Both the position numbers and the translations under genes were made by a program. Shown here one piece after another: positions 11,915-61,835 of a stretch of 64,000 bases of DNA. Source of the stretch: Neoechinorhynchus agilis (Eukaryota > Animalia > Acanthocephala). The stretch lies in assembly GCA_051530055.1 (NCBI GenBank), contig CM121342.1, positions 12,787,480 through 12,851,479 on the forward strand. The letters are read 5' to 3'. Positions within the stretch are counted from its first letter, which is position 1. The number at the start of each line of letters is the position of its first letter. The notes under the pieces are model-generated. The model saw only the letters and a program-made list of their open reading frames with translations, did no database searches and had not been told where the DNA came from.

Positions 11915-14900
11915 CTAGAATATATCAGGACACCGGGACCAATCTTGGTTTTCCTTACACTTCCAGTATTCATCGGTGAAAATATACATCTCAGTATTTG
12001 TGTATGGATCATGCTGTTTCTTGAACCAACAAGGAATATGTTCCTTGACCGCAACGGTTTGTTTCTCCTGCTCTTCACTTTGGGTCGAGGATTCTTCATC
12101 GTCTTCGGTAACTCGGGTTTCCTCCATTCGACGTCTGGCGTCTCGTTGTTTTTGTTCTACTCTCAGTTTTTCCGCATTGGCTTCATCCCACCGTCCCTCC
12201 TCCATAAGACGTTGATCTGGACGCAGACGGGAATCAGTAGGTGCGACTCCATCCTCCCATTCATTGAGCTGAACAGCAAGTTCGGTGAAATTATACAATA
12301 GTCTCAGATAAGGTCTAGGACGAATGAATTAAAGAGCGATTGAAAAAACACGACAAACAAAACACTCACGGTGGGTATTTTCTTTTCCAAAGAACGAAGG
12401 GATTCGCTGTATCCAGACGAGAATGAGAGGTAACTTTTTGTGGATTTATCACTTCGGCACCTATTGATTACGTAATCAATCGTAATATTCATTAGGCGCG
12501 ACACAACTCACATTCAATCATTTCATTCCATTTGCCGCTAATAACGTATCGAGCGATTTTATTCGAATCAGTAACAACTCCGATGACCTTCCTAGGTGGC
12601 TCCTTCGAAAAGTAGCTATATTCGTAGTACTTTATGTGACAATTGTCTTTTGTTTTTTGATTGTAAATATCCATCTCACCAACATTATCGATCCATAACT
12701 TACCGACAATAATGTTCTGGACGCACGTTGTGACTTTTCGCCATGTGTAGTGATTGCCAGATTGGGGGAAGAGGAGATGCGAATGTCCCAGTGGAACGAT
12801 ACTCAAATATTGACCTCTGAACTTACTTGTCATTGTGAATTGTTGCCACAAAGTCCAATCACGACCTGTGGCGTGATTTGATAGCGACGGAGGGTGGTGT
12901 GAGACCTGTTCCGCGATTGATCGCCACCCGAGATCATCTCGTCGATCACACTCATAAGTCTCACCTAAAAGAGGATTGAATGGTTTTGCCGCTCTCTCCG
13001 CCGTGGTACTGTAGGCTGATATTGTGAACGCAGCCACGTACGCCATTTGCTTGCAAGGGTTACTCGGAGTGGTCAAAGGATTCGCATTGTAGAGCAGCAA
13101 AAATCAACCACAAACTCAATTTAAACTTACTATATAATCTGTAGACGTTTAGTTCTCGTTGCTGTTCGATTAAAACTATATTCGCCGAGTATAGGATTTA
13201 AAAAAAGAAGAGGTGACTGGGGAAAGAAGACACGAAAACTGCAATTGAACTCAATGATCGCTCCGTTTAGAATCAAATTTAGCAGCGCGGTCAAGAAGCT
13301 CGCTATACTCGAGTTCTTCGGTCAATCTCTGAAGCATTGATATAGGTTCGCTGAAATTGACAGGAACGGGGATTCTCGATAAGTCTTTTCCTATACAATT
13401 CTTTATAATTCCCCACAGATTAAGGCTATAATCGGGTTTCGCTGGGATCTTAGTTCGCCTCACCTTCTTTGCTCCTGATGTAAATACCGGTGACTTTTCG
13501 GTCGTTGACTGGTCACGTCTTTCGCCTCTCGCTGGATGTGCAATCTTAATAAGAACGCTAGGTTTACCCGTTGATCGGTCATCGTCATCTTCTTCATCGC
13601 TTTCCTGGTCGTCTTGGATTACACGGTGATCGACAGTATCAAGTGGACCAACTGATGAGGACGGAAGAGGCATACGGACGATTTCTTCCAAGTCTTCAGA
13701 AGAGTCGAGAGCATCGTGGAAGTCATCGTCGGCCAGAGTCGAAGTAATACTCTGTTCGTCCTCGGTTAAGACTGTATTAGCGTCCACCGATTCCGGAACC
13801 ATAAATCTCACAGCTTTACCTGGAAAACAAGATAAAGATATCGGCGATTTGCTAGCAAAAAGAAGGGATGTGTGTTGTTGCAATAACACTAAAATCGACC
13901 TCTCTTTTTTTTAGCGTATCGCCGTTTGAACGTAAGTTATGCGGCTGGCGCCCGATTACCGCGTACACTGCCTACACGAACAAATTAATCAAAGTGGTGT
14001 TGTATTATTATTGGCTTATTTGGCCCGCCACCGCTACCCGATTCCAGAAAAGGGCAAAAAATAAAGGAGAAATTTAGAGATTTGGATATTTCTTTCGCTC
14101 CGCCTAAGACGATCCACCGTGGTGTCCGTGAAAACATGGGATTTCAAAAATCGGCGATCTAAGCAGAGACGGAGTCTCAGCTGAAGCAAGTCGTTATGTG
14201 TGTGCTGACACGTTCAACATGAGTTTGCGCTCGAATTTCTACGAAATGCACAAGTTAACTTACCTTCTTTATCGGCTTTGAACAAGGACCGTTCAAAATT
14301 CTTCATTTGTCGAGCCATTTGTTCGACCATCAGATCCAATTGAACTCTAAGTTCATGTTCCTTCATATAGGCCCGTTGCCATTGTTGCGCTTGTTTCCTG
14401 GCAATACTGACGAACGCTCTACAAGCGTTAATAAGACTCGTGATGGTGACCCTGAAAATGGTGGCACGTTCATTGAGAACTTTAGTAGTAGCCATGAATG
14501 TGGAAACGTCGGCCGGAGCAAGCGAATCAAGAGTAGCCACTTGTTTCTGAAGAAGGTGATGGTGTTTTTTGCTAAGATCGAAGTAATTCTCGACTTCTTC
14601 TAATTTTTCTATCAGGTCTCGGTTTAGTTCAAATGTAGGCTGGGAATAATCACGAGGTGTCTCAGGTGATCGAGAATGTGAGTCAGTGGACGTGTTTTTC
14701 CCCTCTTCGTCCTCACTTTCGTCTTCGTTCTGAAAAATACGATCGTAATGCACGGCTTTCGATTTGGCGAGTTCTAGGACAGATATCCATTTTTGCTTTT
14801 CGCGTTCATTGGCTGCCTTCAGATGCATGGACGTTCCACCGCTTCTTATCAAAAAGTGGCACGAATCGAGCGAAACGACGATCGCTGTACTCAAATAAAT

Positions 14901-23613: not shown

Positions 23614-24053
23614 TTTTAGTCGCATTGGCCACGAATTTAGTTGTGGCTTTTTTGGTAGACGAAAAAATAAATAGTACGGCATTATTTTTTTGAATATTTG
23701 TTCAATAAGTTCAAGCTTCGGTTCATGATTACTTCAAGTTTTTCATATCCAGAAAATCCACAGGGATGGTAAATTTTGACTTGCGGTGAAGATAATCCCG
23801 GTTCCTAAGGCGAGGTTTCCTCTTTCGAAATATTTCAGAACAATAAAATGATTTTTAACCGGGATCATCTTCACCACAAGTCAAAACTTCAAGTTTTGTT
23901 TTACAAATCCTAAGAAAATATTAATGGTTGCTTCGAAGAAAACTCGTATCAAAGATGTATTTGCAATGGACGAGTATAACTCCGATTTGATAAAGCGTTA
24001 CATGGCAACCAACGTGATAAAAACAAAATTAAAATATCTTGTGAAATACCATC

Positions 24054-26168: not shown

Positions 26169-26294
26169 TAGAGTTTATATTGGAAATATTTCGCGAGGAG
26201 GTAACCTCATCAACTCGAATATTTAAAAACTTACAAGCAATGACTGACGAGGCGAGATTACGTCCTCGCGAAACATTTCCAATATAAACTCTAA
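26169..26294. repeat. Inverted repeat carrying two outward-facing hammerhead-like motifs
   Basis: Arms 26171-26199 and 26263-26292 (28/29 match); CTGACGA-g-GCGAG..CTCGC-GAAA at 26244-26273. Confidence 0.7.
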
Positions 26295-26610: not shown

Positions 26611-28039
26611 ATGTATTCAAACCGATGCGTGATATCGTCGATGGCACAAAAGTTGTGTACCGCTCCGGCTAATTCGATAGAAATTCCATGTGAGTGTTTA
26701 ATAGCACAAGCTCATGGAGGACGACTAGTGAAGAACACGTTGGTATTTTCGACGAACCGTCAATTTGTGTTCCAAATCACGAATGGGAGTCGTCGCGTGC
26801 GTATGTGCATGAATGCGGATTGCGTTGAGAGAATCTGTTACCGTTTAGCTGACGAAGTTCGACACTTATTTTTTTGTTTGAGATGAAATTCTCACACCCT
26901 AAGAAGGGCATCACAGAAGGTGGGGTGAGAGTTTCGTTGTATTTATGAAGACAGCCTTGGTCATATGATGAAAGGACTGAGGGCGTCTAAGAAGGAAACG
27001 AAAGGTTCAGCATCGACGTATACACATCCCGTTTTAGTGGTCATGAGTTCAAATGTACCCATGAGTGCATGTGAACGTTTAGTTGAACAATTGAACTTAT
27101 ATTTCTTTACCCAAGACTTGAGTGAGCTCGAAGACTATGAAGTAGTCGCAAAGTGCGTAATGCAGAACTGTGGCTCCCATCAATGGGCCATAGAACAAGC
27201 AAAGAGAAATCGATGCAGTTTTGAGCTGAAACAGAGCGGATTTCGATATGAACGAGCCTCGATCTTTATAGAAATCAATCATGTAAGCTGTCTTAGGGAA
27301 TCAAACGCGTTCTTGAATGATGCAATCGTTCATTTCTACTGTCAATATGTGTTCAATGAGCTTTCGGGTGTACAGGCCCAAAAGTATTGTTATGTATACG
27401 ATCCTCTTTTCATGGAATCCCTAAAAAATGGATTAGATAGTGAAGACGGACAGAAGCGACTTCGTAGTTGAGTGCGATTTAGCTTCTATGAAATAGCAGA
27501 TCTTTTTGCTTAATCTGCACGCATTTAAATGGACGCGCAATACTGATATCCGATCTAAGGACTTTCTCTTATTTCCCGTAGCCAGTGCTCTACATTGGTC
27601 TCTTTTAGTTCTATGCTTTCCCGGATTAGCAACCGTGAGCGAAGACGACTACATAGCGTTGAAACACAAAATTATCGAGGATCGGAAATATCAATCACCA
27701 AAGCCACGTATCCTTATAATGGATTCACTGACTTCTTCACTAGAATGTAAGACTTCTTCTATGTCGGCGCCATCGTTGATAGTTAAATATATGTCGCAAA
27801 TATGGACATCTAAACCAAGGAAGTTGCTAAATCTAGACATTGTAAATGTTTGTACACCACAACAAATGAACTTTGTTGACTGTGGACTCTTTCTTCTTGC
27901 ATACGTCGAGTCTTTTCTTTTGGGCTTTAACGAACGTTTTGATCAATTAGATGAAATAGAACGGGCTTTGGATCAAGTAAGTGTCAAAGGAATGAGGAAA
28001 CGGATACTCGATGTTGTGCGGCATTTGCCACCTCAATGA
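26611..28039 (+). CDS. SUMO protease, SENP6/7-like (Ulp1/C48); start approximate
   Basis: FLNDAIVHFY; KWTRNTDIRSKDFLLFP..HWSL; IMDSL; QQMNFVDCGLFLL (His-Asp-Cys triad). Confidence 0.88.
27467..27527 (+). other. Non-canonical TA-flanked hairpin insert (putative intron, 61 nt) in SENP
   Basis: CG-TA-[GTTGAGTGCGATTTAGC...GCTTAATCTGCACGCATT-TA]-AATGG; removal gives KRLRKWTRNTDI. Confidence 0.75.
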
Positions 28040-28153: not shown

Positions 28154-29192
28154 TTATTCTAATGAGATGACCGAAATCATCGTTGCGATGCACTGACTGA
28201 CATTTCTGAGCAGCAGTTCATCTACCTCCTCATTGACGTGTCTTTTCGGATCCTTCCTTCCAACATTCTTGACAACCATTTCCTTCTCACTGAACTTCTC
28301 CTCTTCGTTCAGCCTACTCACATACTGTTCTCCTAAAGTCTTAAGATTTGTTAACGCTTCCACGTTTTGTTTCTCGTGTTCCTTAAAATCAGCTAAATGC
28401 CATCCTGCACTCCAATTTTCTCTATGAAGGTTAAGAAGCATCCACGTTTCGAGATCATTCTTCAAATATTGAATTCCTATTGAATAATAGTGGCGATTTA
28501 GTCCGTGCACAATGGCCTGCGTCGAAGGCTTGCATTGGTGGCCAATCATGCTGGTTACTTGACGAGACTCGTGTCTTGTCAAAAGCCCACCAGCTCCGAT
28601 CAATCGAAAAGCATCGATGACTACTTTTCCTTTGACGCTTTGAATGGGGTCGATGACCACAGCAACTGCTCTTTTCGCTAACTGTTCAAAACTTTGTTGT
28701 GTACTGATATCTACGCGGCGTGGAGAAAGAGTGGTTTTCAAATCTCGATTAGAGAAAAAAAGAAGGAAAAGCTCTCAAACCAAAAACAGCTCAAAAACCT
28801 CTCTTTCTCCGTACTCCAGAAAGCCAACACCCGAATCCAGGATGGCTGTGGTACCACCCAACTACGGTCTCGGGTCTTCCCGTCTGTTTCAACATATCGA
28901 GCATCTTTGCTTGAAACACTGGGTCGACCGCTTCAACGCTAACCCCAGTGCCCGATTGAGGCATCGCAAACACGTCCACGACCGTTACCGTGTATTCATC
29001 AACGAAGCGGCCCAACATAAGACCCATCACCTCCATCGGAACACCAGCTCGACCGTGTTTGAGCATCTTTAGTAAACTAAGGGCCGATATATATATCTGC
29101 TCAGCTGTATCTTGAACTTCAACATCTCGTTGACCGCCACCACCGTCGACTCGCTGACCACCCGTCACTATACTGCGAAGTAGATTCTCCAT
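28154..29192 (-). CDS. PSMD14: 26S proteasome JAMM deubiquitinase RPN11
   Basis: [32 protein letters not shown]; [17 protein letters not shown]; [19 protein letters not shown]. Confidence 0.97.
28712..28811 (-). other. Non-canonical GTA-flanked hairpin insert (putative intron, 100 nt) inside the RPN11 JAMM motif
   Basis: GGA-GTA-[CGGAGAAAGAGAGGTTTTT...GAAAACCACTCTTTCTCCACGCCGC-GTA]-GAT; 16/18 inverted repeat. Confidence 0.78.
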
Positions 29193-29439
29193 ATCGCTCT
29201 TTTTTCAGTTCCTCCGCCAAACGCGAGGAGTGGGAGAAGGGCCACTTCTTCAAAAGTCTTCCGTGTGAATGTAACGCAGTTTCCATTGATTATCATAACG
29301 GCAAAAAACCCATTTCCGATCAAACAGCGTCGCCGCCATAATGCCGATGACTCTTCCGAGTGCCAATTATTTTCATAATAGCGTGAATCGCTGAGGCGCA
29401 TGTTTTTATTTTAATTTCACAAAAATACGAGCTAGAGTT

Positions 29440-30438
29440 TATTTATTTGCCTAGCCTTCGCAGTACGACGGCTTCAACTGGGAAGCAGTCTAAAATGTGT
29501 GGAGTGGGGAGACACAAATAGGTCACAACGTTCGCGAATCGAGTTCACTAGCTCATTCCTCTTGTTGACGAGGTGCATCCGCCCTCATCCTCAGTTCTTT
29601 CCCGATTCGAACCCATCGCCTCTCCCAAAATCACCGCCGCTATCGCTAAATCCAAAAGGGGCTTTATAAATGATCTCGGTGGATAGGTTCACCTCGCCAT
29701 CTGAATGGCACCGCGAATGGTGTTACGCCCGAGGTGTGGCTGCGTATACTGGCAGGAAAAGGCCAGCAAGCGAATGGTTGATGATTTCGAGAGGAATCGG
29801 CAAAAGTTAAAGCCCATTCTGAAGATTCCATTCGTCAGCGAGCAATTCACGAGCGACATAAGAAGACTGTTGCGAAGAGCGGGATTGGATGTTCGCCTGG
29901 TTAACGAGGACGGAACATCGCTCATGCCCGAGCGCACGCCAGGCAAGGACAGGAAGGGTCGATATGGTGCTGCGCGGTGTGGAGAGAACGCAACGTTGTG
30001 TATAAGATGACATGCGAACATTGCAAAAAAAAGGAAATGGCGTTATATCACATATATTGGGAAGACGGAGCAGCGACCGCTGTACAAACGAGTTACATGG
30101 AACATGTTCGTAATGCGCTCAACCCCAGCGTGCCAGCAGCCACACCTCGGGCGTAACACCATTCGCGGTGCCATTCAGATGGCGAGGTGAACCTATCCAC
30201 CGAGATCATTTATAAAGCCCCTTTTGGATTTAGCGATAGCGGCGGTGATTTTGGGAGAGGCGATGGGTTCGAATCGGGAAAGAACTGAGGATGAGGGCGG
30301 ATGCACCTCGTCAACAAGAGGAATGAGCTAGTGAACACGATTCGCGAACGTTGTGACCTATTTGTGTCTCCCCACTCCACACATTTTAGATTGCTTCCCA
30401 GTTGAAGCCGTCGTACTGCGAAGGCTAGGCAAATAAAT
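29440..30438 (+). mobile_element. Penelope-like element 3' fragment with an inverted terminal copy (about 300-bp arms)
   Basis: Arms about 29441-29743 and 30137-30438 nearly identical; spacer encodes KIPFVSEQF..VYKMTCEHC..YIGKT..EHVRNA. Confidence 0.88.
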
Positions 30439-30980
30439 CAACTATATCTGTGCCGTATATGTCAAATTAAATTAAAATTAAACCCAATTATTTTCGTACC
30501 ACGACTCCATCGTCCCAATGATTCACTCTCTTGATGATTTTTATTGGCCCTTTCCCTAAATGGTCACAAACACAAAGATTTAATGGGAAATATGGTATTG
30601 GTTATGAATAATAAAAATTTCATTTTCCCTCACTGTATTGTCCGATGAGGCAACTTCTTCGTAAGCCATCAGCATCTTTTAGTGCTCGGTTAGACACTTT
30701 TTTAGATAGTAGTGGTCGAAGGACATACCTGTTCGCAATCCCGAAGAGCATGCCCGAACGTATCGATTCGAATCGCACTTGTGTCGCCATTAGTATAATT
30801 TATTGATTTTGCTTGTTTTTGATTGGAATAAAATTCAACTTGAGCAGAATCGGAGTTCAGGCTCCCGAGTCTGTTGAGAAACAATTCGTATGAAAGTTTA
30901 AAGAGGTATAGAGAGAGAACAAAGAAATATTCTATGTTAAAGGGACTCCGCGATATGACGATTAAATTTCGAGTCTATAG

Positions 30981-39189: not shown

Positions 39190-39833
39190 ATGATTCATCG
39201 AACTCTAATCGCCATCACTCATCGAAGCGCCTCAACGGCGATTCGATCAGGCATCGTAGGTCGATACGTCACCGCTATTCACAATGCAGCCGTACACGAA
39301 AAAGCGCTGGATAAAGTCTGCAAAGACTTTGAATGTCTACAAACTATTTTTCAATCAAAACCGAATCTGCTATCTACCGAGCGATTCCTGATCATTCTTC
39401 TGGACGATGAACATGAACGCTCAGTGACTTAAATGCTCTTCAGAGCCCTTTGATAGATCGACCAACCCGCTCGAAACTACTTGAAGAACTCACTATAGAA
39501 CTAAAGGCAGATCCCATTGTGACGTCATCACTTGCACTGGTCGCGGCCAATGGTCGCGAACGATTGATTCCTAAGCTACTCAGTCAAATGGCCGAAATTG
39601 GAAAAGGTTTGAGAAAAGAACTCCAGTGTACGATATGGCTTTGCGAACCATTGTCCAGTCAGAAGAAATCAAAATTAGAAGACGCTTTAAGTGCAATCGC
39701 CAAAGGTTCTACACTTCGAATTGATTACCAAATTGATCCAAGTATCTTGGGAGGATTAAAGGTCCAAATCGGAAACGGTTTCATCGATTTGAGTATCCAA
39801 AACACCCTTAATAGATGCAAAGAAGCGCTTTGA
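39190..39833 (+). CDS. ATP5PO: ATP synthase OSCP subunit
   Basis: GRYVTAIHNAA; LVAANGR; IDPSILGGLKVQIGNGFIDLSI. Confidence 0.88.
39373..39431 (+). other. Non-canonical TA-flanked hairpin insert (putative intron, 59 nt) in OSCP
   Basis: CTGC-TA-[TCTACCGAGCGATTCCTGATCAT...ATGAACATGAACGCTCAGTGACT-TA]-AATGCT; removal gives KPNLLNALQSPLI. Confidence 0.72.
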
Positions 39834-44048: not shown

Positions 44049-44487
44049 GATGGTATTTCACAAGATATTTTAATTTTGTTTTTATCACGTTGGTTGCCAT
44101 GTAACGCTTTATCAAATCGGAGTTATACTCGTCCATTGCAAATACATCTTTGATACGAGTTTTCTTCGAAGCAACCATTAATATTTTCTTAGGATTTGTA
44201 AAACAAACTTGAAGTTTTGACTTGTGGTGAAGATGATCCCGGTTAAAAATCATTTTATTGTTCTGAAATATTTCGAAAGAGGAAACCTCGCCTTAGGAAC
44301 CGGGATTATCTTCACCGCAAGTCAAAATTTACCATCCCTGTGGATTTTCTGGATATGAAAAACTTGAAGTAATCATGAACCGAAGCTTGAACTTATTGAA
44401 CAAATATTCAAAAAAATAATGCCGTACTATTTATTTTTTCGTCTACCAAAAAAGCCACAACTAAATTCGTGGACAATGCGACTAAAA

Positions 44488-47199: not shown

Positions 47200-48410
47200 T
47201 GAGTGCTTTTTTTGCGGGAAGTTTCAATGAAGTACGAGTAAATCAATTTTTTACATATCGCCAAGAAATCACTTTCCCTGCTAATCGTCTCAATGTAGAG
47301 CCAATCGCGATGGGACGAATCAAACCGTCCTTCTTTTCTAAAGCGCAGAAGGAAGCGCCAGAGAATAACGTCCACTAACCGAGTCAAGGCATTCAGGAGA
47401 ACATGGGATGGATCACCTACGGAGAAGGACATCATGTCCTTTAGGTACTGAGGCCGAAGCCCATCGAGCCATGTGCTGACCCATTTGCGAACGAAGAAAC
47501 AGCTGTCATAACAACATCAACCGAAAACTCTAACGGGTGCACGAGGGGATCATCTCTGAATATTCTAGATGACCAGTGGGTCGAGGATGTTTCTCTCTGA
47601 GAAGTTGGAGAGTTTTCGTATCATTTCTTGTGAATTCGTTGGTGGATGATATAATGCGAACCGCGCCCCTCACATCACCATCGGCGAGTTTAGAAGATAC
47701 TCTCTGGATCATTGAACGAGTTGAAATTCGGCTCCGATTCGGTGGCTTTGAAAAATATCCTCTTAAAACGCGTTCTTTGCGTAGAACCTCTCCAAACGAA
47801 TTGCCGAAGGACACCCTGTTTTTGATGAGGGTAACAATCATCTCGTCAGATGGTACTCCAGCACAAAGTACCAGTCTCGGGAATGCGAAAAGGCGTGTCC
47901 AAGATATTTCGGTATTTGTCTCGAGACAGTCGCTCACCTGAAATCGAGCGCCCTCCGGGATCCGCTTCAGGATGTTTCGGGGCAAAAGGCGCACGATCTC
48001 CAGCAACGAAGGGGTGCAATAGACGATGGTTTGGATGTTCTGACGAGGTTCATTGAGCTGAGGAGCACAGTTTGCTAGCAGAAGGCCGGAACCAACACAT
48101 CGGGAATCCCTTAGGCCGTGAGTCCAAAATTCTCCCCCTTTCGTAATTTTGATCTGCTTGTCACAGACCGGGCAATTATGTGTTGAGAGCTTCGGATCTC
48201 GGGCAACATTGGCCTCACCTTCCAGAGTACTTGAAATTTCCGTTTGCTGCTTGTTCTCTACAGGTTGTTCGGACCAAAATTGATTTCAAGTCCCGAGTGG
48301 AGCGAGCGGAAGGCGGTGGAATCGTTGACATGCCGATTGCTTGTAGGTTTTTGCTTGTAAGTTTTTCAATTGTCTTGTCAAGTTTTCCTTGTAACTAAGA
48401 ATTAAAGGAA
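47200..48410 (-). mobile_element. CRE-like element B, 5' half only, degenerate
   Basis: HNCPVCDK..HGLRDSRC knuckle; RNILKRIPEGAR; LADGDVRGAVRII; FCALEKKDGLIRPIAIGSTLRRLAGK. Confidence 0.8.
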
Positions 48411-48417
48411 TAACCAA

Positions 48418-48530
48418 TGACAGGAGGGCTCGCTCGTTCCTAGTACAGAACATATCCTTGGCTATCCAGCGAGGAAACGCAGCGAGTGTCTTTCCGTGTT
48501 TCAATTTTCATCGAATCGAACTTTGATTGA
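48418..48530 (+). mobile_element. CRE-like 3' stub, tail-to-tail with element A
   Basis: DRRARSFLVQNISLAIQRGNAASVF on the plus strand. Confidence 0.7.
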
Positions 48531-48559
48531 GTCTATCAAACTACTGAAATATGCGGCTC

Positions 48560-51500
48560 ATTCGAAAATGTTTTGAATCTAACAGTAGATTTCAATTCAA
48601 CAGCATCACTTTTCGTAATCCCTCATTCCGCGCTACTCCATTGGGTCGTTGTTATCACGCTTGCCGTGTTGCCCCGTTGAATAGCCACACTCAAGCTTTG
48701 GATGAGGTAGTTCCTTTGTCTGTGATCTCCGCTGGCTTTTATGAGTAGTCAGCCTATCTCCGCGCAAAATTTCTTTGCCGAAACTCCAAACGCCCCATTT
48801 GTCTCCACACCGAAAGGAAGAAATAAGTGAGTCTTTTCCAGCTCAGCGTATTTCGCTGTCTTCCTCCTTTCGGCCGCCGTCGCAGCTCCTCCCGGTCCTG
48901 ATATTGCATCACTTCGGTTGGAGGGTGCTAACGAATCGACGCATGTGGCGTCCCAGATAAGGCATTTTCCTTCTTTCCACGGGAATATGGTCATCCCATC
49001 GGGACGTTTGCCATCTGAGCGACGGCTCTAACCAAGCTCCAGACTCCTTAGAAGAGCTCGCCACTAGCCGGGTTTGAGACACCGAATCGAGATGCCCTTT
49101 CAAGGAATTATAGGCTCTCTCTACGAGGGGTTTATCCCAAACAGGCTGTTTGTGGCTATTTTCTGGAACTTGATCAAGATCGGTCTTGATGAGCCACGAG
49201 GAAACTCCACGACGTTCGACATCATCCGTCGAGATATCGGTCTGCTGCAATATAACATTGGTTATATTTTTTGTTTTGGTGACCGATGCGAGGAAAGCTG
49301 GAAGTGCTAATTCGACTACGCTCCGAAGGCCCAATCCACCGTATTCTATAGGCAGTATTGCTTGTTGTCATGCCTCATTTGAAAGCTGGGAGTTCGTGAT
49401 GCGCTGTAGTTGTCTCCTCAGCATTGAATCAATCTGTCGAAGCTTATGTGAGTGCTCGAAGTATGGAGCCGCTCTTAACTTATACAGCATTTTTGGCATG
49501 CATAAACAATTCCTCAAAAGGAATAGGGCTTCATGAGAGCCAAGCTCACACGTTCGACTGCACAAACGTTCCAAATCAGGCAATACTTCATCGATTTCCC
49601 TCTCAACGTTCGAACTAAGGACACAGCTACCAAGAAGAGAGAAACGATCCGGTTCAATGAGTCGTATTCCCGGAGCGATATCAAGTAGGGAGCTGTAAAT
49701 TGCATCTCTATCCGATTGGTTTGCATTGATTAACATTAGCTCACATTTCGACGAGTTCACAGTTAATCCGATTTTCGATGTGGCGATGATCAGCCTCTTC
49801 AAATCATCTAGGACCACTGCCGGATCTCCACCAATTGTCGCGTCGTCTAGATACCACACGTTTAGTTTTGAGTTAAGCATCCGAATGATATCGTTCGTTA
49901 TCAAAGCAAACCCTATCAGACCCAGAGGATCTCCCTGTTGTACACCGGTTTCTGACCAAATGGTGTGGTGGTCGAAGAATAGAGGGGTCTTGGTGCTATA
50001 TGCGATCTGAAAATAACGATATGCTCCAGGAAGGCTAACAGCAACTGTTTTTAGTAGGGCTGAGCGACCGACTGAATTAAAGGCGTTGCTGAAATCCACC
50101 TTAAGCACTGCGTTCAATGTGCTCGATTGTCCGATGAAAGATCTTGTCGCATGGACGATCGATTCAGCTCCACATGGAGTGCAGCATCCTAGTTGAAAGG
50201 GACGGAGTTGACGTCCAACGTCATCGTAAAATCTTTTGCACAATAATTTAGCAGCCAAACGTCGTATTGTACATCCCACAGCAATCGGACGAATGTCACA
50301 ATTCGTTTTGGATAAGGCGCATAGTGTGGCTGAGAAGAGGAAGCTTGTCGCCTCGGGAGGTGGGATACCGTTGATGATTTGTTCCGTGAAATCCCTTAGG
50401 GGTGCTTCAAGAGTTGATCCAGCAGCTGCTGCTCCTAAACTGAGCATGTCTTTCTAATGTTGAGGGCGAAGATCATCGGGACCATGCCCAGAGCCGTTGG
50501 GGAAGGAGGCGATTGCTTTTCTTAACTCTGAGATATCGCATTGGAAACTGGCCTCAGTAGGGACTTCAGGTAAGGAAGGGGGATTGCCGACGGGGTGTTT
50601 ACCCCAAAGTGCATCAAGTGTGCACTGATCACTTCTAGCAAATGAGTCCGTCGAACTTAGCAACCGAACTGCACCTCGTACATCGAAGTCAGCCAGTTTT
50701 GCAGAGACTCTCTTGGCAAGGAGAGAACGCTGGTTTGAGCATTTTGGGCGTTTAGCTTCGATTGAAGGCGACTCCATAGATCTACTCAAGCTTATCCCAA
50801 ATAAATTGTCATAATCCGTGAGTCGCTTTTTGATCGTACAGGTGAGATTACTGTCCGAGTCGCGGTTTGTGTTCAAGATTATTCGAGGAAAGGCGAATAA
50901 CCGCAAGTAGTTAGCTTTGATCGGCTCAGAGGCGCACTTCGAGAGCAGTGTCGAATAGAACCTCGCACATTGGTATCTCGCGCCTTTTGGGATCCTTTTT
51001 AATATGTTTTGTGGCAAGGCGCTGATCAGGGAGACGATTGGAGATACTGAGTCAGATTGGCCACCACTGAAGGATTGTGGAGGTAAAGGTGGAAGGGAAG
51101 AACCAAGACATCTCGTTTTCAATGGACCGTGTTTCCTAGTTAAACCCATCGAGGTCAATCCGAATTTGCGACCGCATACTGAACAGTGTCGTGTAGGTTT
51201 GTGTGCATCATCATCTTGTGCAGCGATACAACCAGCCAAATCGGAACAGTCCTTACTGCTCGGGTCCATGGAGGGATCCGAGCTCAGAAACCTGTGTGTT
51301 ACTATTCTTCCGTGCTTGTGATTCGGTAAAGACGTCATTGAATGTTTCGTTCACAAATTCTTCCTTTTCGTTTGTTTGCTCGGGTATCAAGATATATTTT
51401 GTTATTTGCTTTATGATTGTTTGAATTCGGAGATCGACAAAATTGTCAATATGCGTTGTTTTTGTTAAATCTTGACTTAACAGTAGATTTTAGTTAGTCA

Positions 51501-54030: not shown

Positions 54031-57000
54031 ACTTTCCTCAGGATCATTTCAAGTTCTGATATTCGAGAGAAGATTGGGCAGCATGGAAAAAGAAGCGTAG
54101 ATATACAGTGGATTCCGCTTAATTGGGACACCGCTTAATCGGGACAGCCGCTTATTTGGGACAAATCTCAAAGAACGGAAACCAAACCAAGAAACCAATA
54201 GTAAATTTGTATATTTAATTGGGACAACATTCCGCTTAATTGGGACAGTAAATTTAAGATTTTAGTACAGTAGAGTATCTATTAGCTGATTTTGTTTTTA
54301 CTGAGTTTTGGTTTAACCGAGCCGCTGCAGCGGAAAAACAAACACAACCCCCTCCCGGGAAAGCCAGAAAGACGGCTTCTTTCTGAACCCGACTCCCGCG
54401 TTTTATAAAGCCGTGGCGGCCTCATATCAACATTTGCAATCTTTTACATCCGAGCCGGGGCAGCGGACATTCGATTACCAATCACCTCCCGCGTTAACAA
54501 CGCGTGAAGCTATTTTTTGTCAATTGTATTTTTTTTTAAAATTTACCCTTTCTAAAATGCCAAGGAACGATTTGTCATTTACCAATACAATTGCCTTGCT
54601 TGATAAAATAAAAAGCCAGCCGCTTAATACAAGTTATCGTCGGCTCGCTGAGATAACTGGTGTACCAAAATCTACTATATCGCGTGTCTTACGACAAGAA
54701 AGTCAACTGCGTAAGGAATTCGAATTACAAGAAGGACAGGCAGGGACATCCAAAAGAAAACGTGAGGGGAAGGATCCAGACGTTGAAGAAGCACTGGATC
54801 AATGGTTTTCTATTGTTAGTGGCAGAGGCGTAAATATGAACGGTCCAATATTGAAGGCGAAGTCAGAGGAGTTCGCTAAAAAACTGGGCCGCAACGATTT
54901 CAAAGCAACTGATGGTTGGTTATCGCGATGGAAAGCAAGGCACGATATTAAATTTAAAAAAGCGCACGGTGAAAAGACCAGTGCCGACAAAGAAAGTTTG
55001 GAACAGTGGAAGATTACAAAAATTCCTACCTTTTTAGAGAATTTTTGTGCTGATGACATTTACAATGCTGATGAAACCGGCCTCTATTACCGTGCTACGC
55101 CAGACGGTTCCTTATGCTATATACATATTGCACTGTCTGGTTATAAAAAGGCGATGGACCGCATTACTGTGTTATGCTGCGCAAATATGTCAGGTACTGA
55201 CAAAAAAGTGCCAGACCTCGATGCTTTAAGGGGTTAAGAGTGGAGGGTTTACCAGTGGAGTGCTATGCAAACAAAAATGCGTGGATGACTTCTGATATTT
55301 TTCGAAATTGGCTGTTCAGTTGGGACAAAAATTTACAACTTAAACAAAGAAAAATTCTGCTGATTGTTGACAATTGTGCCGCACACCCTCATTTAGACAA
55401 TCTACGAAATATATATCCGGAATTTCTTCCTCCTAACACCACCTGCTTAGTGCAACCAATGGACATGGGTGTAATCAAAAATTTGAAGGCTTTCTAACGT
55501 GGAAAATTGGTTAATTTCATATTAGAATCCATTGATGAAAACCTATTAACATGTTCCACAACAGCCAGAGAGATTAGTTCCCAAATTAACCTTTTGCAAG
55601 CAATACAGTTTGTCGCTGACAGTTGACGAGCTATAAAAGCCACCAATATACAGAACTGTTTTGCTAATTGCGGCTTTAAACCTTTGGATATTTTAGAAAT
55701 TTTTAACAATGAAGAAAATGAGGATATGTTACCAGTTCCTGTTATTAACTCAAGAATTTTTAGCTATAGATAACAATTTACCATGCTACGATGAAAATGA
55801 AGACTGTGAGGATTCAATTGTAGAAAGTATTAAATCTAAACATGAAAAATTAGACGAAGATGAAGACGATTATGATGAATCACCTGTGCCAGTGACTAAC
55901 CAGGAGACAAAAAAAGTGTATGGCCGTGTTACAACGTTATTTTATGCAGGAAGGAAATGAAGGAAGCCCTACATCTGCACTGAACATCTGTGCTGATTTT
56001 GTAGAAGCCAACTGTCACAAAAACAAAAGACAAACTACACTTGACTCATTTTTCCATTGAATTAGTATGTATCTACCAATTAAATATTTTATTAAGGATT
56101 TTTTAGATTTATAATACATACATATTCATAATATATTATGTACCTATATATAAAGTTTTCAAGGGTTTATAAAATAAAATTATTGAAAAATATGCATTGT
56201 TTAATTTTGTGTGTTACTGGTTAATGACCTTGTTCCCAAAACCAATAAAATTAATTTCTTTAAAAGTGAACTTCGCTTAATCGGGACAGACGCTTAATTG
56301 GGACAAAAAGCCTCGATCCCGATGTGTCCCAATTAAGCGGAATCGACTGTAGTGAGGCGCGAGGTATAGGAGGGTGAAACGAATTAGGATTACGAGTGTT
56401 GTGCTCGTGTGAAAAGTGGCTGAAAAGCGATAAAAAAATGTGGTGATAGGGTTGAGAGGTGTTTTGATTGTTTGACGAAAATTTTATTACGGCATTCGGT
56501 GAGCGGGGGAAATCAACTGAGCAAATTTTAGAGGCTTGCGACGGATTTGTGATTTGGATAGGTTGCAAAAGACGCGATATCCGCATATGAAGGAGCGTAA
56601 AATAAGGCTGTAGTAAATTTTGGAGAGAGCAGGCGAAGGGACTCATAAGTGGCAGAGCCGTTTGAGGAGGTAAATTTTAAATGTAATGCGTTTGAAGGTT
56701 CTCATTTCAGATTTGATTGAAACTGCAGACCCAGAATTCTGAAGGAGGTGATTCGTCGGATGTCATTTAGTAGCTCGGAGGAGGATAAGGGGCTGTGGGA
56801 GAGTGGGGGATCACTTCGAAGCATTTAGAGAAATTCAGGTAGAGTTTGTGATCGAGACAGAAATCTTGACGTGGATGATTTCGTTAGAGGTTAAGGAGAG
56901 GGAGAGGTGGGCTGGTGATTGAGTGATGAGGGTGAGATCGTCGGCATATTAGAAAAGTTTAAAGTGAGAGGATAGAGATTCAAGGTCGCTTAGAAAAATA

Positions 57001-57300: not shown

Positions 57301-57400
57301 TCCCATAAAGATAAAGACGTAAAAGGATCAGGAACACAAAATCATTGATTTGATATTAAGTCTCAACTAACTTCAATAATCGCATTAGACTTGCGATTAC

Positions 57401-58825
57401 TCATTGTCGATTCCATTCATCCACTTGACTGCCCATTCCGCCGCCATGTGGATAGTGGCCTCCCATTCCGGGCATTTGACCTCCTATTCCGCCTCCGTGT
57501 GGATACTGGCCTCCCATTCCAGACATTTGACTTCCCATTCCGCCTCCAGGTGGATACTGGCCTCCCATTCCGGACATTTGACCTCCTATTCCGCCTCCGT
57601 GTGGATACTGGCTACCCATTCCAGCCATTTGACCTCCTATTCCGCCTCCGTGTAGATACTGGCCTCCCATTCCAGACATTTGACTTCCCATTCCGCCTCC
57701 GTGTGGATACTGGCCTCCCATTCCGGACATTTGTCCTCCTATTCCGCCTCCGTGTGGATATTGGCCCCCCATTCCGGACATTTGACCTCCTATTCCGCCT
57801 CCATGTGGATATTGGCCTCCCATTCCAGACATTTGACCTCCCATTCCGCCTCCGTTTGGATATTGGTCTCCCATTCCAGACATTTGACTACCCATTCCGC
57901 CTCCGTGTGGATACTGACCTCCCATTCCAGACATTTGACTACCCATTCCGCCTCCATGTGGATACTGGCCTCCCATTCCGGACATTTGACCACCCATCCA
58001 GGACATTTGACCTCCTATTCCGGCTTGATGTGAATACTGACCAACAATTCCGCCGCCGTGTGGATACTGGCCTCCTATAGCAGACAATTGACTGCCCATT
58101 CCTTCTCCATGTGGATACTGGCCTCCCATTCCGGACATTTGACCTCCTATTCCGCCGCCATGTGGATAGTGGCCTCCCATTCCAGCCATTTGACCTCCTA
58201 TTCCGCCTCCGTGTAGATACTGGCCTCCCATTCCAGACATTTGACTTCCCATTCCGCTTCCATGTGGATACTGACCTCCCATTCCGGACATTTGAACGCC
58301 TATTCCTCCTCCGTGTGGATACTGACCTCCCATCGAAGTTATGCCACCCAACATGTTTGAAGAACTTGTGCTTCCACCAGTAGATGGCCACTGGCCATTT
58401 ATCCCACCGCTGTGCATGAAGTGATTTCCGACACCACCCATTGCAGGTCTGTAACCCGCTGTTCCAGCAGATCCTGGCCAAACATTTCCTGAGAGGCTTG
58501 AATTTTCCGCAGGCTTTATGCTGGGCGGTGGCCTAGATGGAGGTCCTAAAGCATTTCGTCCAATTCGTTCCTCCCGCCTCCAACGTGATGATCCCACGGG
58601 AACTGAATGGATTCCGACTGTTGGATTATATTTTCCTGTAACAGGTGCAATTCCATATTTAACTTTGTTTAGTTTTCTGCCACTTGGTAAATTCGTGTGT
58701 AGCGCATACATTTTAAAAAACTTGTTTAATGTTCGAGGAATCTTGGTTTCAGTTAGAAACCATCCTTTTTCTGTCAGATGTTTGCCTTCGATAGTCAAAA
58801 ATAGCACACCGACCCATAAGTTCAT
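57401..58825 (-). CDS. 474-aa Gly/Met/Gln/His-rich tandem-repeat protein
   Basis: About 18 copies of GGQYPHGGG(I/M)G(G/S)QMSGM after a non-repetitive N-terminus. Confidence 0.7.
   Translation of the reverse strand: MNLWVGVLFLTIEGKHLTEKGWFLTETKIPRTLNKFFKMYALHTNLPSGRKLNKVKYGIAPVTGKYNPTVGIHSVPVGSSRWRREERIGRNALGPPSRPPPSIKPAENSSLSGNVWPGSAGTAGYRPAMGGVGNHFMHSGGINGQWPSTGGSTSSSNMLGGITSMGGQYPHGGGIGVQMSGMGGQYPHGSGMGSQMSGMGGQYLHGGGIGGQMAGMGGHYPHGGGIGGQMSGMGGQYPHGEGMGSQLSAIGGQYPHGGGIVGQYSHQAGIGGQMSWMGGQMSGMGGQYPHGGGMGSQMSGMGGQYPHGGGMGSQMSGMGDQYPNGGGMGGQMSGMGGQYPHGGGIGGQMSGMGGQYPHGGGIGGQMSGMGGQYPHGGGMGSQMSGMGGQYLHGGGIGGQMAGMGSQYPHGGGIGGQMSGMGGQYPPGGGMGSQMSGMGGQYPHGGGIGGQMPGMGGHYPHGGGMGSQVDEWNRQ
57420..58330. 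repeat. 51-bp coding minisatellite
   Basis: Unit about CCCATTCCGCCTCCGTGTGGATACTGGCCTCCCATTCCAGACATTTGACYT. Confidence 0.95.
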
Positions 58826-59552
58826 TGTGTTTGCGTTATGGAGTTGATTTCAAGCCTCGGCTTATATAGTATTGAAAGTTTTCAAGTAAACATATTGATT
58901 TAAGTTTCACGATTCAAAAGAACGGTAAACAAGTGAGCAGTCTTCAGGTAAAGTTAGAAGGTATGATCATTGGAGTGCAGTTAAAACTCAGGAGGCTCTT
59001 AGCGCTAAACACTCTATGGTGTCCGGAGGCAGATGAAAGTTATTGGTTGTCGAGGAAATGGGATTGTATGAAGGATAATAGTCAACAGACTATATGTTAA
59101 AAAATGAAAGGCAAGATGGGTTATTGATCTAAGATTTGAGTGATGGAATGTAGTAAAACCCAAATTTTAACCATTAAAACAAAGAAATACTAAAGGAAAT
59201 CTTTCTGGAACTTTTCGGTTCTGATTTCTATTAACGCATGTCGGAGCGATGCCTTGAAAATATCTTCAACAAATCATGAGTTCGTTTTCAGATTGAATAT
59301 ACTCTTTCGCCAAGTATTTTAACGCGGCCCATACAACGAGCTTCCAGGTTTCCTTTTGACTGATGTGTTCATGGTAAAAAAGGCGAAACACCTGGGCACC
59401 GCATCAAAAGTGCCTTTCAAGAGAATATTTGATTACGATCCTTAGTCCTTTCACATCACTCTGAACTGACGTAACTTAGATCATCTATAATCTTTGATAG
59501 AGCAAAACAAAATCGAGTTTAAGCTTTACAACTACACGCCGAAGAGAAATTC

Positions 59553-60657: not shown

Positions 60658-60779
60658 GGTAAATGAGTATTTATTAAAGACGTTTCGAACCTCGTCGGGT
60701 TCATCATCGCGTCTATTACTAACAAACTGATCGTGAACCCGACTAGGTTCGAAACGTCTATAATAAATACTAATTTACC
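60658..60779. repeat. Inverted repeat with two outward-facing degenerate hammerhead-like motifs
   Basis: Both arms read GAACC-cgac(t/g)a-GGTTC-GAAA-CGTC; cores CTGATCG and GCGATGA. Confidence 0.65.
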
Positions 60780-60785
60780 ACAGGC

Positions 60786-60932
60786 GTAAAAAATTAAAAG
60801 AATTTATTAGATCCGATGTCACAATCTCGTACGCGTTTTTCAAGGTTGGTTGTAACTTTTTAAAGAAGCAACCTTGATAAACGCGTACAAGATTGTGCCA
60901 TCGGATCTAATAAATTCTTTTAATTTTTTTAC
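60786..60932. repeat. MITE-like inverted repeat (about 63-bp arms)
   Basis: GTAAAAAATTAAAAGAATTTATTAGATCCGATG...CATCGGATCTAATAAATTCTTTTAATTTTTTTAC. Confidence 0.85.
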
Positions 60933-61762: not shown

Positions 61763-61778
61763 GCCTCCGTGGCGCAAT

Positions 61779-61818
<40 letters not shown>

Positions 61819-61835
61819 GAGCCCACCCGGGGGCG
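61763..61835 (+). tRNA. tRNA-Asn (GTT)
   Basis: Cloverleaf GCCTCCG/CGGGGGC; anticodon loop CTGTTAA; GGTTCGAGC T-loop; T5 terminator at 61841. Confidence 0.97.

Follow-up and report, generated by a model that had tools for sequence, protein, structure and literature searches.

A base-paired insert without canonical splice sites interrupts the catalytic motif of RPN11 in the acanthocephalan Neoechinorhynchus agilis

The RPN11 (PSMD14) gene of Neoechinorhynchus agilis is interrupted, inside the catalytic motif of its product, by a 100-nt segment that no pair of canonical splice sites removes exactly. The gene lies in a 64,000-nt (64-kb) stretch of the genome (GenBank assembly GCA_051530055.1, contig CM121342.1, positions 12,787,480 to 12,851,479), hereafter the window, whose coordinates are converted to those of CM121342.1 by adding 12,787,479. 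We favor, with moderate confidence, the reading that the segment is an unconventional intron defined by its structure, which arose from a foldback transposon inserted at a TA dinucleotide and is excised exactly from RNA. At least one, and probably two, further introns of like anatomy occur in neighboring conserved genes, and the data suggest that N. agilis removes a class of transposon-like unconventional introns that the published annotation does not capture.

RPN11 is encoded on the minus strand, from 29192 to 28154, and has no intron apart from this segment. The first coding part (28815..29192) extends from Met1 to Gly126; its open reading frame (ORF) starts with MENLL at the ATG at 29192 and, if unspliced, continues as VRRKRGF to a stop codon, which yields an ORF of 133 amino acids (aa). 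The second part (28154..28714) begins with VDISTQQSF and ends at the stop codon at 28156-28154. Joining 28815 to 28714 produces a 312-aa ORF with a complete JAMM motif, and tblastn with this joined protein recovers both parts at 100% identity. The annotated product matches Pfam PF01398 (JAB) and PF23594 (RPN11_C), which correspond to the MPN/JAB domain and the RPN11 C-terminal domain, and its top matches are all PSMD14 proteins, from many animals, with 63-68% identity. The gene retains an intact ORF in each half, with ~66% identity to other animals and with all the catalytic residues.

In JAMM enzymes, the Asp of the motif binds zinc, and the Ser three residues earlier supports catalysis. In N. 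agilis, E...HxH-x7-S-x2-D becomes contiguous only when the 100 nt are removed exactly, while the Ser and the Asp are apart in both the genome and the public gene model. The 20-residue JAMM stretch is highly constrained: in 95 full-length orthologues, substitutions occur at only 3 positions and no indel is present. That exact removal alone restores the motif supports precise excision.

The insert is located between the Gly and Val codons of S-G-V-D and reads GTACGGAG...CACGCCGC; in its GT..GC frame it occupies 28715..28814 of the minus strand (GTACGG...CGCCGC). A GTA direct repeat marks both edges. The upstream copy (28812..28814) includes a TA that may belong to a target-site duplication, and the downstream copy (28712..28714) is the Val codon of S-G-V-D, so that the empty site would be TCTGGAGTAGATATC. 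Because GTA is present at both edges, the cut can slide by 0-3 nt, which gives GT..GC, TA..CG, AC..GT or CG..TA as the terminal dinucleotides. The original prediction, which placed the insert at 28712-28811 (the CG..TA frame of the same 100 nt), described all four equivalent boundaries as non-canonical, and the sequence bears this out. An in-frame stop codon (28793-28791) lies 8 codons into the insert.

Repeat search and RNA folding revealed an inverted repeat, GGAGAAAGAG[A/T]GGTTTT, whose 17-nt arms are complementary at 16/17 positions: a 5´ arm at 28794..28810 (RNA GGAGAAAGAGAGGTTTT) and a 3´ arm at 28722..28738 (RNA AAAACCACTCTTTCTCC), both on the minus strand. The 3´ arm is separated from the junction by ACGCCGC(G), a stretch of 7-8 nt that can partially pair with the first GU of the intron and UGG of the upstream exon. 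G-C and U-A pairs, together with three exon bases, lengthen the foot of the hairpin, which would bring the exon ends side by side. The insert RNA folds with an energy of -36.5 kcal/mol (z = -2.4), and 3 of 200 shuffled sequences are equally stable. At the DNA level, the insert fits a 98-bp foldback element flanked by a TA target-site duplication, g[TA]CGGAG...CCGCG[TA]g, for which the empty site GGAGTAGAT contains a single TA.

No Rfam 15 family matches the insert at its gathering score (best 17-22 bits against thresholds of 46-73), and neither a pattern search nor blastn-short detected the insert, or either of its arms, a second time within the 64 kb. The window does contain other hairpins resembling miniature inverted-repeat transposable elements (MITEs), which are unrelated in sequence to the RPN11 insert. 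These are near-perfect foldbacks of 84-142 bp with arms of 24-64 nt, located in non-coding, intergenic DNA at 26169-26293, 23771-23889 (with a copy at 44212-44330), 60658-60779, 60788-60929 and 56265-56348. Directly upstream of RPN11, inverted repeats of ~340 bp (96% identical; 29404-29743 and 30136-30477) flank a region of ~390 bp, and the ORFs upstream of the gene (MAPRMVLRPRCGC... and YKMTCEHC...) resemble those of a GIY-YIG/Penelope-like element, as judged by eye.

To define what conventional splicing could achieve, we exhaustively enumerated all excisions that keep GFGCWLS and ISTQQSF in one frame. No U2-type GT-AG or GC-AG pair restores S-G-V-D. Pairing GT(28814) with AG(28711) removes 104 nt and causes a frameshift, as had been predicted. 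The only in-frame GT-AG excisions are of 43, 55 and 88 nt, and these leave 19, 15 and 4 additional residues, respectively, between the Ser and the Asp, which agrees with the earlier statement that every such choice adds at least 4. The public model (KAL7672798.1, hypothetical protein ACOME3_007677, 327 aa) equals the window gene minus the 55-nt segment from GT(28798) to AG(28744) (28744..28798, minus strand) and therefore has 15 residues inside S-x-x-D.

Other types of known intron were also considered. The U12-type consensus consists of /RTATCCTT (the slash marking the cut) and a branch site TCCTTAAC; here the 5´ end is GTACGGAG, and TCCTTAAC is absent. Introns of the XBP1/HAC1 type, which are cut by IRE1, carry two 7-nt loops CNG/CNGN at the cut sites; inspected by eye, none of the four possible cuts combines C at -3 with G at -1. 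A splice site created by A-to-I editing was rejected on inspection, as GC cannot be turned into AG. GCAG in place of GCCGC, the raw-read outcome that was proposed to refute the finding, would require two substitutions, which is atypical for a long-read assembly error.

When the remaining conserved multi-exon genes of the window were examined, a second insert of like anatomy emerged in the gene for oxysterol-binding protein (OSBP; tc/TAAACGGAGCGATCA...GACCACTCCGAG/ta), where it spans 207 nt (13063..13269, minus strand). A TA direct repeat is present, and the CGGAG/CTCCG ends of the insert close the minimum-energy fold. Translation of the upstream exon, ...LEYSELLDRAAKFDS, meets an in-frame TGA at 13253-13251 before any GT or GC occurs, and the next conserved exon begins with NPCKQMAYVAAF (13061). 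Among 543 in-frame excisions, none with GT, GC or AT at the start and AG or AC at the end joins the two exons in frame. When the element and one TA (207 nt) are removed, the product aligns end to end with the lipid-binding domain of human OSBP1 (E = 2.6e-103), with one gap only, of one residue. The public annotation splits the gene at this point into a 505-aa model that ends at that TGA and a 341-aa model that starts at the ATG of MAYVAAF.

A probable third case lies in the gene for the ATP-synthase subunit OSCP (39375..39424, plus strand, 50 nt; atc/TACCGAGCGATTC...GAACGCTCAG/tg). No GT donor occurs anywhere in 39336-39423. Two ways of joining the conserved exons exist: a poor GC(39369)..AG(39424) pair (CT/GCTATC, 56 nt) and excision of the end-paired 50 nt. 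The annotated OSCP product has 151 aa, compared with the ~195 aa expected.

To compare these inserts with ordinary introns, we used 14 verified GT-AG introns of the window (DPM1, five; OSBP, three; DnaJ, three; L29e, eIF3j and QSOX, one each), of which 13 are 44-105 nt long and one is 444 nt. Their donors include GTAAGY, GTGAGT and GTTAGC, and their acceptors are mostly YAG; several more introns of SH3BP5, just beyond the window, look canonical by eye. For each intron, the duplex energy was calculated between its first 18 nt and its last 18 nt, each extended by 6 bases of the adjoining exon. The values for RPN11, OSBP and OSCP are -19.5, -11.2 and -13.1 kcal/mol, respectively, whereas the 14 GT-AG introns range from -3.3 to -9.4 kcal/mol and the window background has a mean of -6.3 kcal/mol. 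All three unusual introns thus lie below all 14 canonical ones (rank probability 1/680), and the RPN11 value belongs to the lowest 0.1% of 3000 random window segments. Aligned on the TA, the three introns begin TA/CGGAG, TAAA/CGGAGCGATCA and TACC/GAGCGATTC. The 3´ arms of RPN11 and OSBP have ACCACTC in common, and every downstream exon starts with T. The three introns share an architecture and not a repeat family.

A generic screen, in which ORFs were merged by excising segments bounded by hairpins or TA, lacked specificity, as the reversed-sequence control gave equal numbers of matches. Brute-force construction of exon chains from annotated product lengths returned non-unique answers, and scanning the rest of the window with Pfam yielded no further conserved genes.

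The position of the RPN11 insert points to a gain. In two bdelloid rotifers, the codons of S-G-V-D are uninterrupted: RPN11 of Adineta steineri has short introns after residue 58 and near residue 146, and that of Didymodactylos carnosus has an intron near residue 54 and a second, unplaced one. Since these bdelloid RPN11 genes have no intron at S-G-V-D, we regard the site as lineage-specific and the insert as a gain, and reject a decayed old intron position.

The original prediction held that precise removal is strongly implied unless another copy exists. The inserts of OSBP and OSCP, together with the lack of any indel among the orthologues, strengthen the case for precise removal, which sequence alone cannot prove. 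The prediction also called for a search for a second RPN11 locus. None was detected in the window by tblastn with the joined protein, and no other RPN11 of N. agilis is among the best 120 protein matches, the latter being a weak test that covers annotated proteins only. A C-terminal RPN11 query returned only distant matches and failed to list even the known N. agilis protein, and is hence uninformative on a second copy. PSMD14 is not mentioned in one supplement of the genome paper (PMC12690905).

These searches bear on the possibility, which we regard as unlikely, that a recent foldback-transposon insertion in the assembled haplotype has inactivated this RPN11 and that the protein comes from an intact allele or from a second locus, unassembled or unannotated. 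Nanopore, PacBio HiFi and Illumina reads were combined in a purged hybrid assembly from a pool of worms of both sexes (PMC12690905), and such an assembly can retain a minority allele. The perfect direct repeat and near-perfect arms are as expected for a young insertion, the window is rich in MITE-like hairpins (84-142 bp), the lack of any other intron would be compatible with a retrocopy, and the search for a second copy was weak. Against this, the reading frame is intact in each half and keeps every catalytic residue, and no other RPN11 of N. agilis appeared in the window or among those 120 matches. OSBP and OSCP would also need to be broken. Three broken alleles within 64 kb are implausible; removal of such segments by the worm is the simpler explanation.

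Removal could instead occur on DNA. The TA-flanked elements would then be limited to the germline and cut from somatic DNA, in the manner of the internal eliminated sequences (IESs) of ciliates, which we consider improbable. The RPN11 and OSBP elements do have TA direct repeats and terminal inverted repeats (TIRs), and exact removal of each element with one TA restores both frames. The DNA was prepared from whole worms of both sexes, which are rich in germline and embryonic tissue (PMC12690905). BUSCO completeness is lower for the genome (47.1% metazoa, 58.4% eukaryota) than for the transcriptome (54.9% and 71.0%; PMC12690905), as is expected if some introns defeat gene finders; other causes are possible, and programmed DNA excision would fit the gap too. 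Against such excision, the OSCP element has TA on one side and TG on the other, not TA on both, and the inserts are the assembly consensus. We know of no precise IES-type elimination in any animal. In addition, the inverted repeats of OSBP and OSCP are merely 5-8 bp, which suffices to hold RNA ends together and is short for a transposase site; this favors removal at the RNA level.

Ordinary splicing of RPN11 would have to join GT(28798) with AG(28744) or AG(28711), and the resulting protein, with 15 or 4 (RRKR) additional residues, would be either tolerated or inactive. We judge this quite unlikely. The 55-nt segment matches the local intron size (44-105 nt), contains a pyrimidine tract, and gives an in-frame, stop-free reading that is identical to the public model. 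However, a predictor would choose a 55-nt intron simply for its open frame, so the model is no evidence. The additional residues part the catalytic Ser from the zinc-binding Asp, Arg takes the place of the Ser (position -3) in both in-frame products, and no orthologue has an indel there. The donor GTTTTT and the acceptor TCGAG are poor compared with the local GTAAGY and YAG, and OSBP, where no such choice exists, would be left unexplained.

Translational bypass, known from phage T4 gene 60 and the byp elements of yeast mitochondria, in which the ribosome would leave the first GUA and land on the second to skip 100 nt, is extremely improbable: the GUA codons match at both edges and the hairpin begins at the take-off site, but 100 nt (207 nt in OSBP) far exceeds known hops, no stop codon directly follows the take-off codon, OSBP and OSCP have no matched codon (TA or T only), and to our knowledge no nuclear gene is bypassed.

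Excision of a structure-defined intron from RNA, the reading that we favor, could proceed as follows. A short foldback DNA transposon would insert at a TA in RPN11. After transcription, the ends of the insert would pair, so that the last base of exon 1 and the first base of exon 2 meet at the foot of the hairpin. The segment would then be cut out and the exons joined exactly, which would restore S-G-V-D independently of GU/AG recognition. The machinery may be a spliceosome-independent cut-and-ligate system, similar to SOS splicing (AKAP17A/CAAP1/RTCB) or to the machinery that removes nonconventional introns in Euglena; a relaxed spliceosome is another option. The anatomy of the insert and the failure of canonical splice pairs are read directly from the DNA; that the segment is excised, that it leaves from RNA and by which machinery, we infer from them. 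As a broader and tentative proposal, acanthocephalans, or at least N. agilis, may possess a genome-wide minority of introns that are defined by end pairing rather than by GT-AG, are born from TA-inserted foldback elements and leave the RNA precisely through cutting and ligation that does not involve the spliceosome and is related to SOS splicing, with essential genes, including RPN11, dependent on it.

Several observations weigh against these proposals. The end pairing of OSBP and OSCP is unremarkable when each is taken singly (background fractions of 0.08 and 0.04, respectively; fold z = -0.5 for OSCP), and a weak GC-AG reading of the OSCP intron is available. The overall sequence is not shared among the three introns, so a common transposon family is not supported, and TA-N0-2-CGGAG...CTCCG, TANNCGGAGCGATCA and TACGGAGAAAGAG are no more common in the window than in shuffled sequences. 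The stems of OSBP and OSCP measure 5-8 bp, that of RPN11 is far longer, and the RPN11 hairpin may be a different and younger thing. An exact look-up in the protein collection found none of the conceptual products (312, 316, 133 and 195 aa). SOS splicing is imprecise, whereas the catalytic motif of RPN11 requires an exact join. The assembly, built from pooled worms, may contain errors, and the window offers a possible example: in the neighboring Ulp/SENP-like protease gene (Peptidase_C48), two ORFs are one base out of register at 27460-27500 (plus strand). Their junction (27463-27497) contains a 33-nt GT...AG segment and may reflect a 1-nt assembly error, a pseudogene or a fourth odd intron; the annotation gives only a 119-aa fragment of this gene.

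The consequences reach beyond RPN11. N. agilis was annotated with BRAKER under the guidance of RNA-seq data (74 libraries), and the genome paper mentions neither introns nor splice sites (PMC12690905). The public models appear to be wrong for three genes, with 15 aa added to RPN11, OSBP split and OSCP shortened. Such models are part of the basis on which massive gene loss has been concluded for acanthocephalans; if our reading is correct, part of the core genes 'missing' from these parasites is an annotation artefact. It would also mean that an animal relies on SOS-type splicing for essential genes, at a site that does not tolerate error, and that transposon insertions become introns in a bilaterian, with a young, long hairpin in RPN11 and older-looking, short-stemmed introns in OSBP and OSCP.

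Elsewhere, the window contains large inverted segmental duplications with 98.5-99.7% identity (5130-7455/39885-42378, 18289-20724/51574-54030 and 20995-25725/42378-47101), which include RPL34e, a 733-aa coiled-coil ORF, a QSOX-like gene and others. They may represent a real palindrome or an uncollapsed or misjoined region of the assembly. A non-long-terminal-repeat retrotransposon (47530-51340, minus strand) encodes a reverse transcriptase whose PF00078 relatives are mostly from moths and metagenomes, and no annotated N. agilis copy of it was found in the protein collection. An ORF at 54317-55494 (plus strand) is transposase-like, pogo/Tigger-like by eye. A 474-aa ORF (57400-58830, minus strand) is built of ~51-bp tandem repeats that encode Gly/Met-rich units of the GGQYPHGGGIGGQMSGM type, and a tRNA-Asn (GTT) gene lies at 61763-61835 (plus strand).

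We found no literature that links acanthocephalans or rotifers with non-canonical introns, and the insert was therefore compared with known elements and systems from other organisms. It resembles a Tc1/mariner-like MITE in its length of 98 bp, its TIRs, its lack of coding capacity, the TA on both sides and the single TA of the empty site. Unlike a strict Tc1/mariner MITE, it has 7 extra bases at one terminus, and no second copy was found in the window and no related transposase was identified. MITE-derived introns with TIRs, target-site duplications (TSDs), species-specific positions and non-GT-AG ends are described in the appendicularian Fritillaria borealis (Henriet et al. 2019, as summarized in PMC11282704; PMC13326754). 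Most Fritillaria introns are of this kind, AG-AC and AG-AT ends are preferred, and a modified major spliceosome removes them. Both species are animals, but non-canonical introns are a minority in N. agilis and share no dinucleotides.

Hairpin-guided excision without GU-AG was first described in animals in 2025, in untranslated regions (UTRs), a pseudogene and engineered or mutant alleles only (PMC12779559). In this process, SOS splicing, inverted-repeat elements are cut from C. elegans and human mRNAs at positions in or near the repeats, which are rarely GU-AG, through AKAP17A, CAAP1 and RTCB (Zhao et al. 2025, PMC12779559). It accepts short non-autonomous and even non-transposon inverted repeats and rescues the host gene. 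It produces several imprecise isoforms with small indels; function was rescued only at poorly conserved sites, and essential coding sequence is not among its known natural targets, which comprise UTRs and a pseudogene (PMC12779559). The RPN11 insert has the feature of an SOS substrate, namely base-paired inverted repeats inside an exon of the mRNA.

The nonconventional introns of euglenids have non-GT-AG borders, TSD-like junction repeats and, close to either end, short complementary motifs that draw the ends together; they are tens to thousands of nt long, occur beside conventional introns and probably do not need the normal spliceosome for their removal (PMC12501133; PMC11282704). The inserts of N. 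agilis are likewise non-GT-AG, end-pairing, repeat-flanked and found alongside conventional introns. They do not follow the Euglena code, 5´-N3-CDG...CH'G-N5-6/R (PMC12501133): in RPN11, GTA-CGG fits and the exon starts with G, but CCG lies 1 nt from the 3´ end instead of 5-6 nt. N3-CGG can be read at the 5´ end of both RPN11 and OSBP, with a 3´ spacer of 1-3 nt (7-10 nt from the main stem).

The introners of the dinoflagellate Amoebophrya offer a further comparison. They make up >60% of introns and form repeated families in a host in which U1 small nuclear RNA was undetected (PMC7789003), whereas N. agilis is an animal in which canonical GT-AG introns dominate (14 verified versus 3) and no repeated family was seen in the 64 kb. 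Amoebophrya introners have no fixed terminal dinucleotides, are ambiguous in their cut site and resemble non-autonomous TIR transposons (Farhat et al. 2021, PMC7789003); inverted repeats of 8-20 nt join the intron ends, and direct repeats of 3-5 nt span the exon/intron boundaries (PMC7789003). The RPN11 insert has the same two features, a 17-nt inverted repeat (16/17) and a 3-nt GTA direct repeat at its boundaries.

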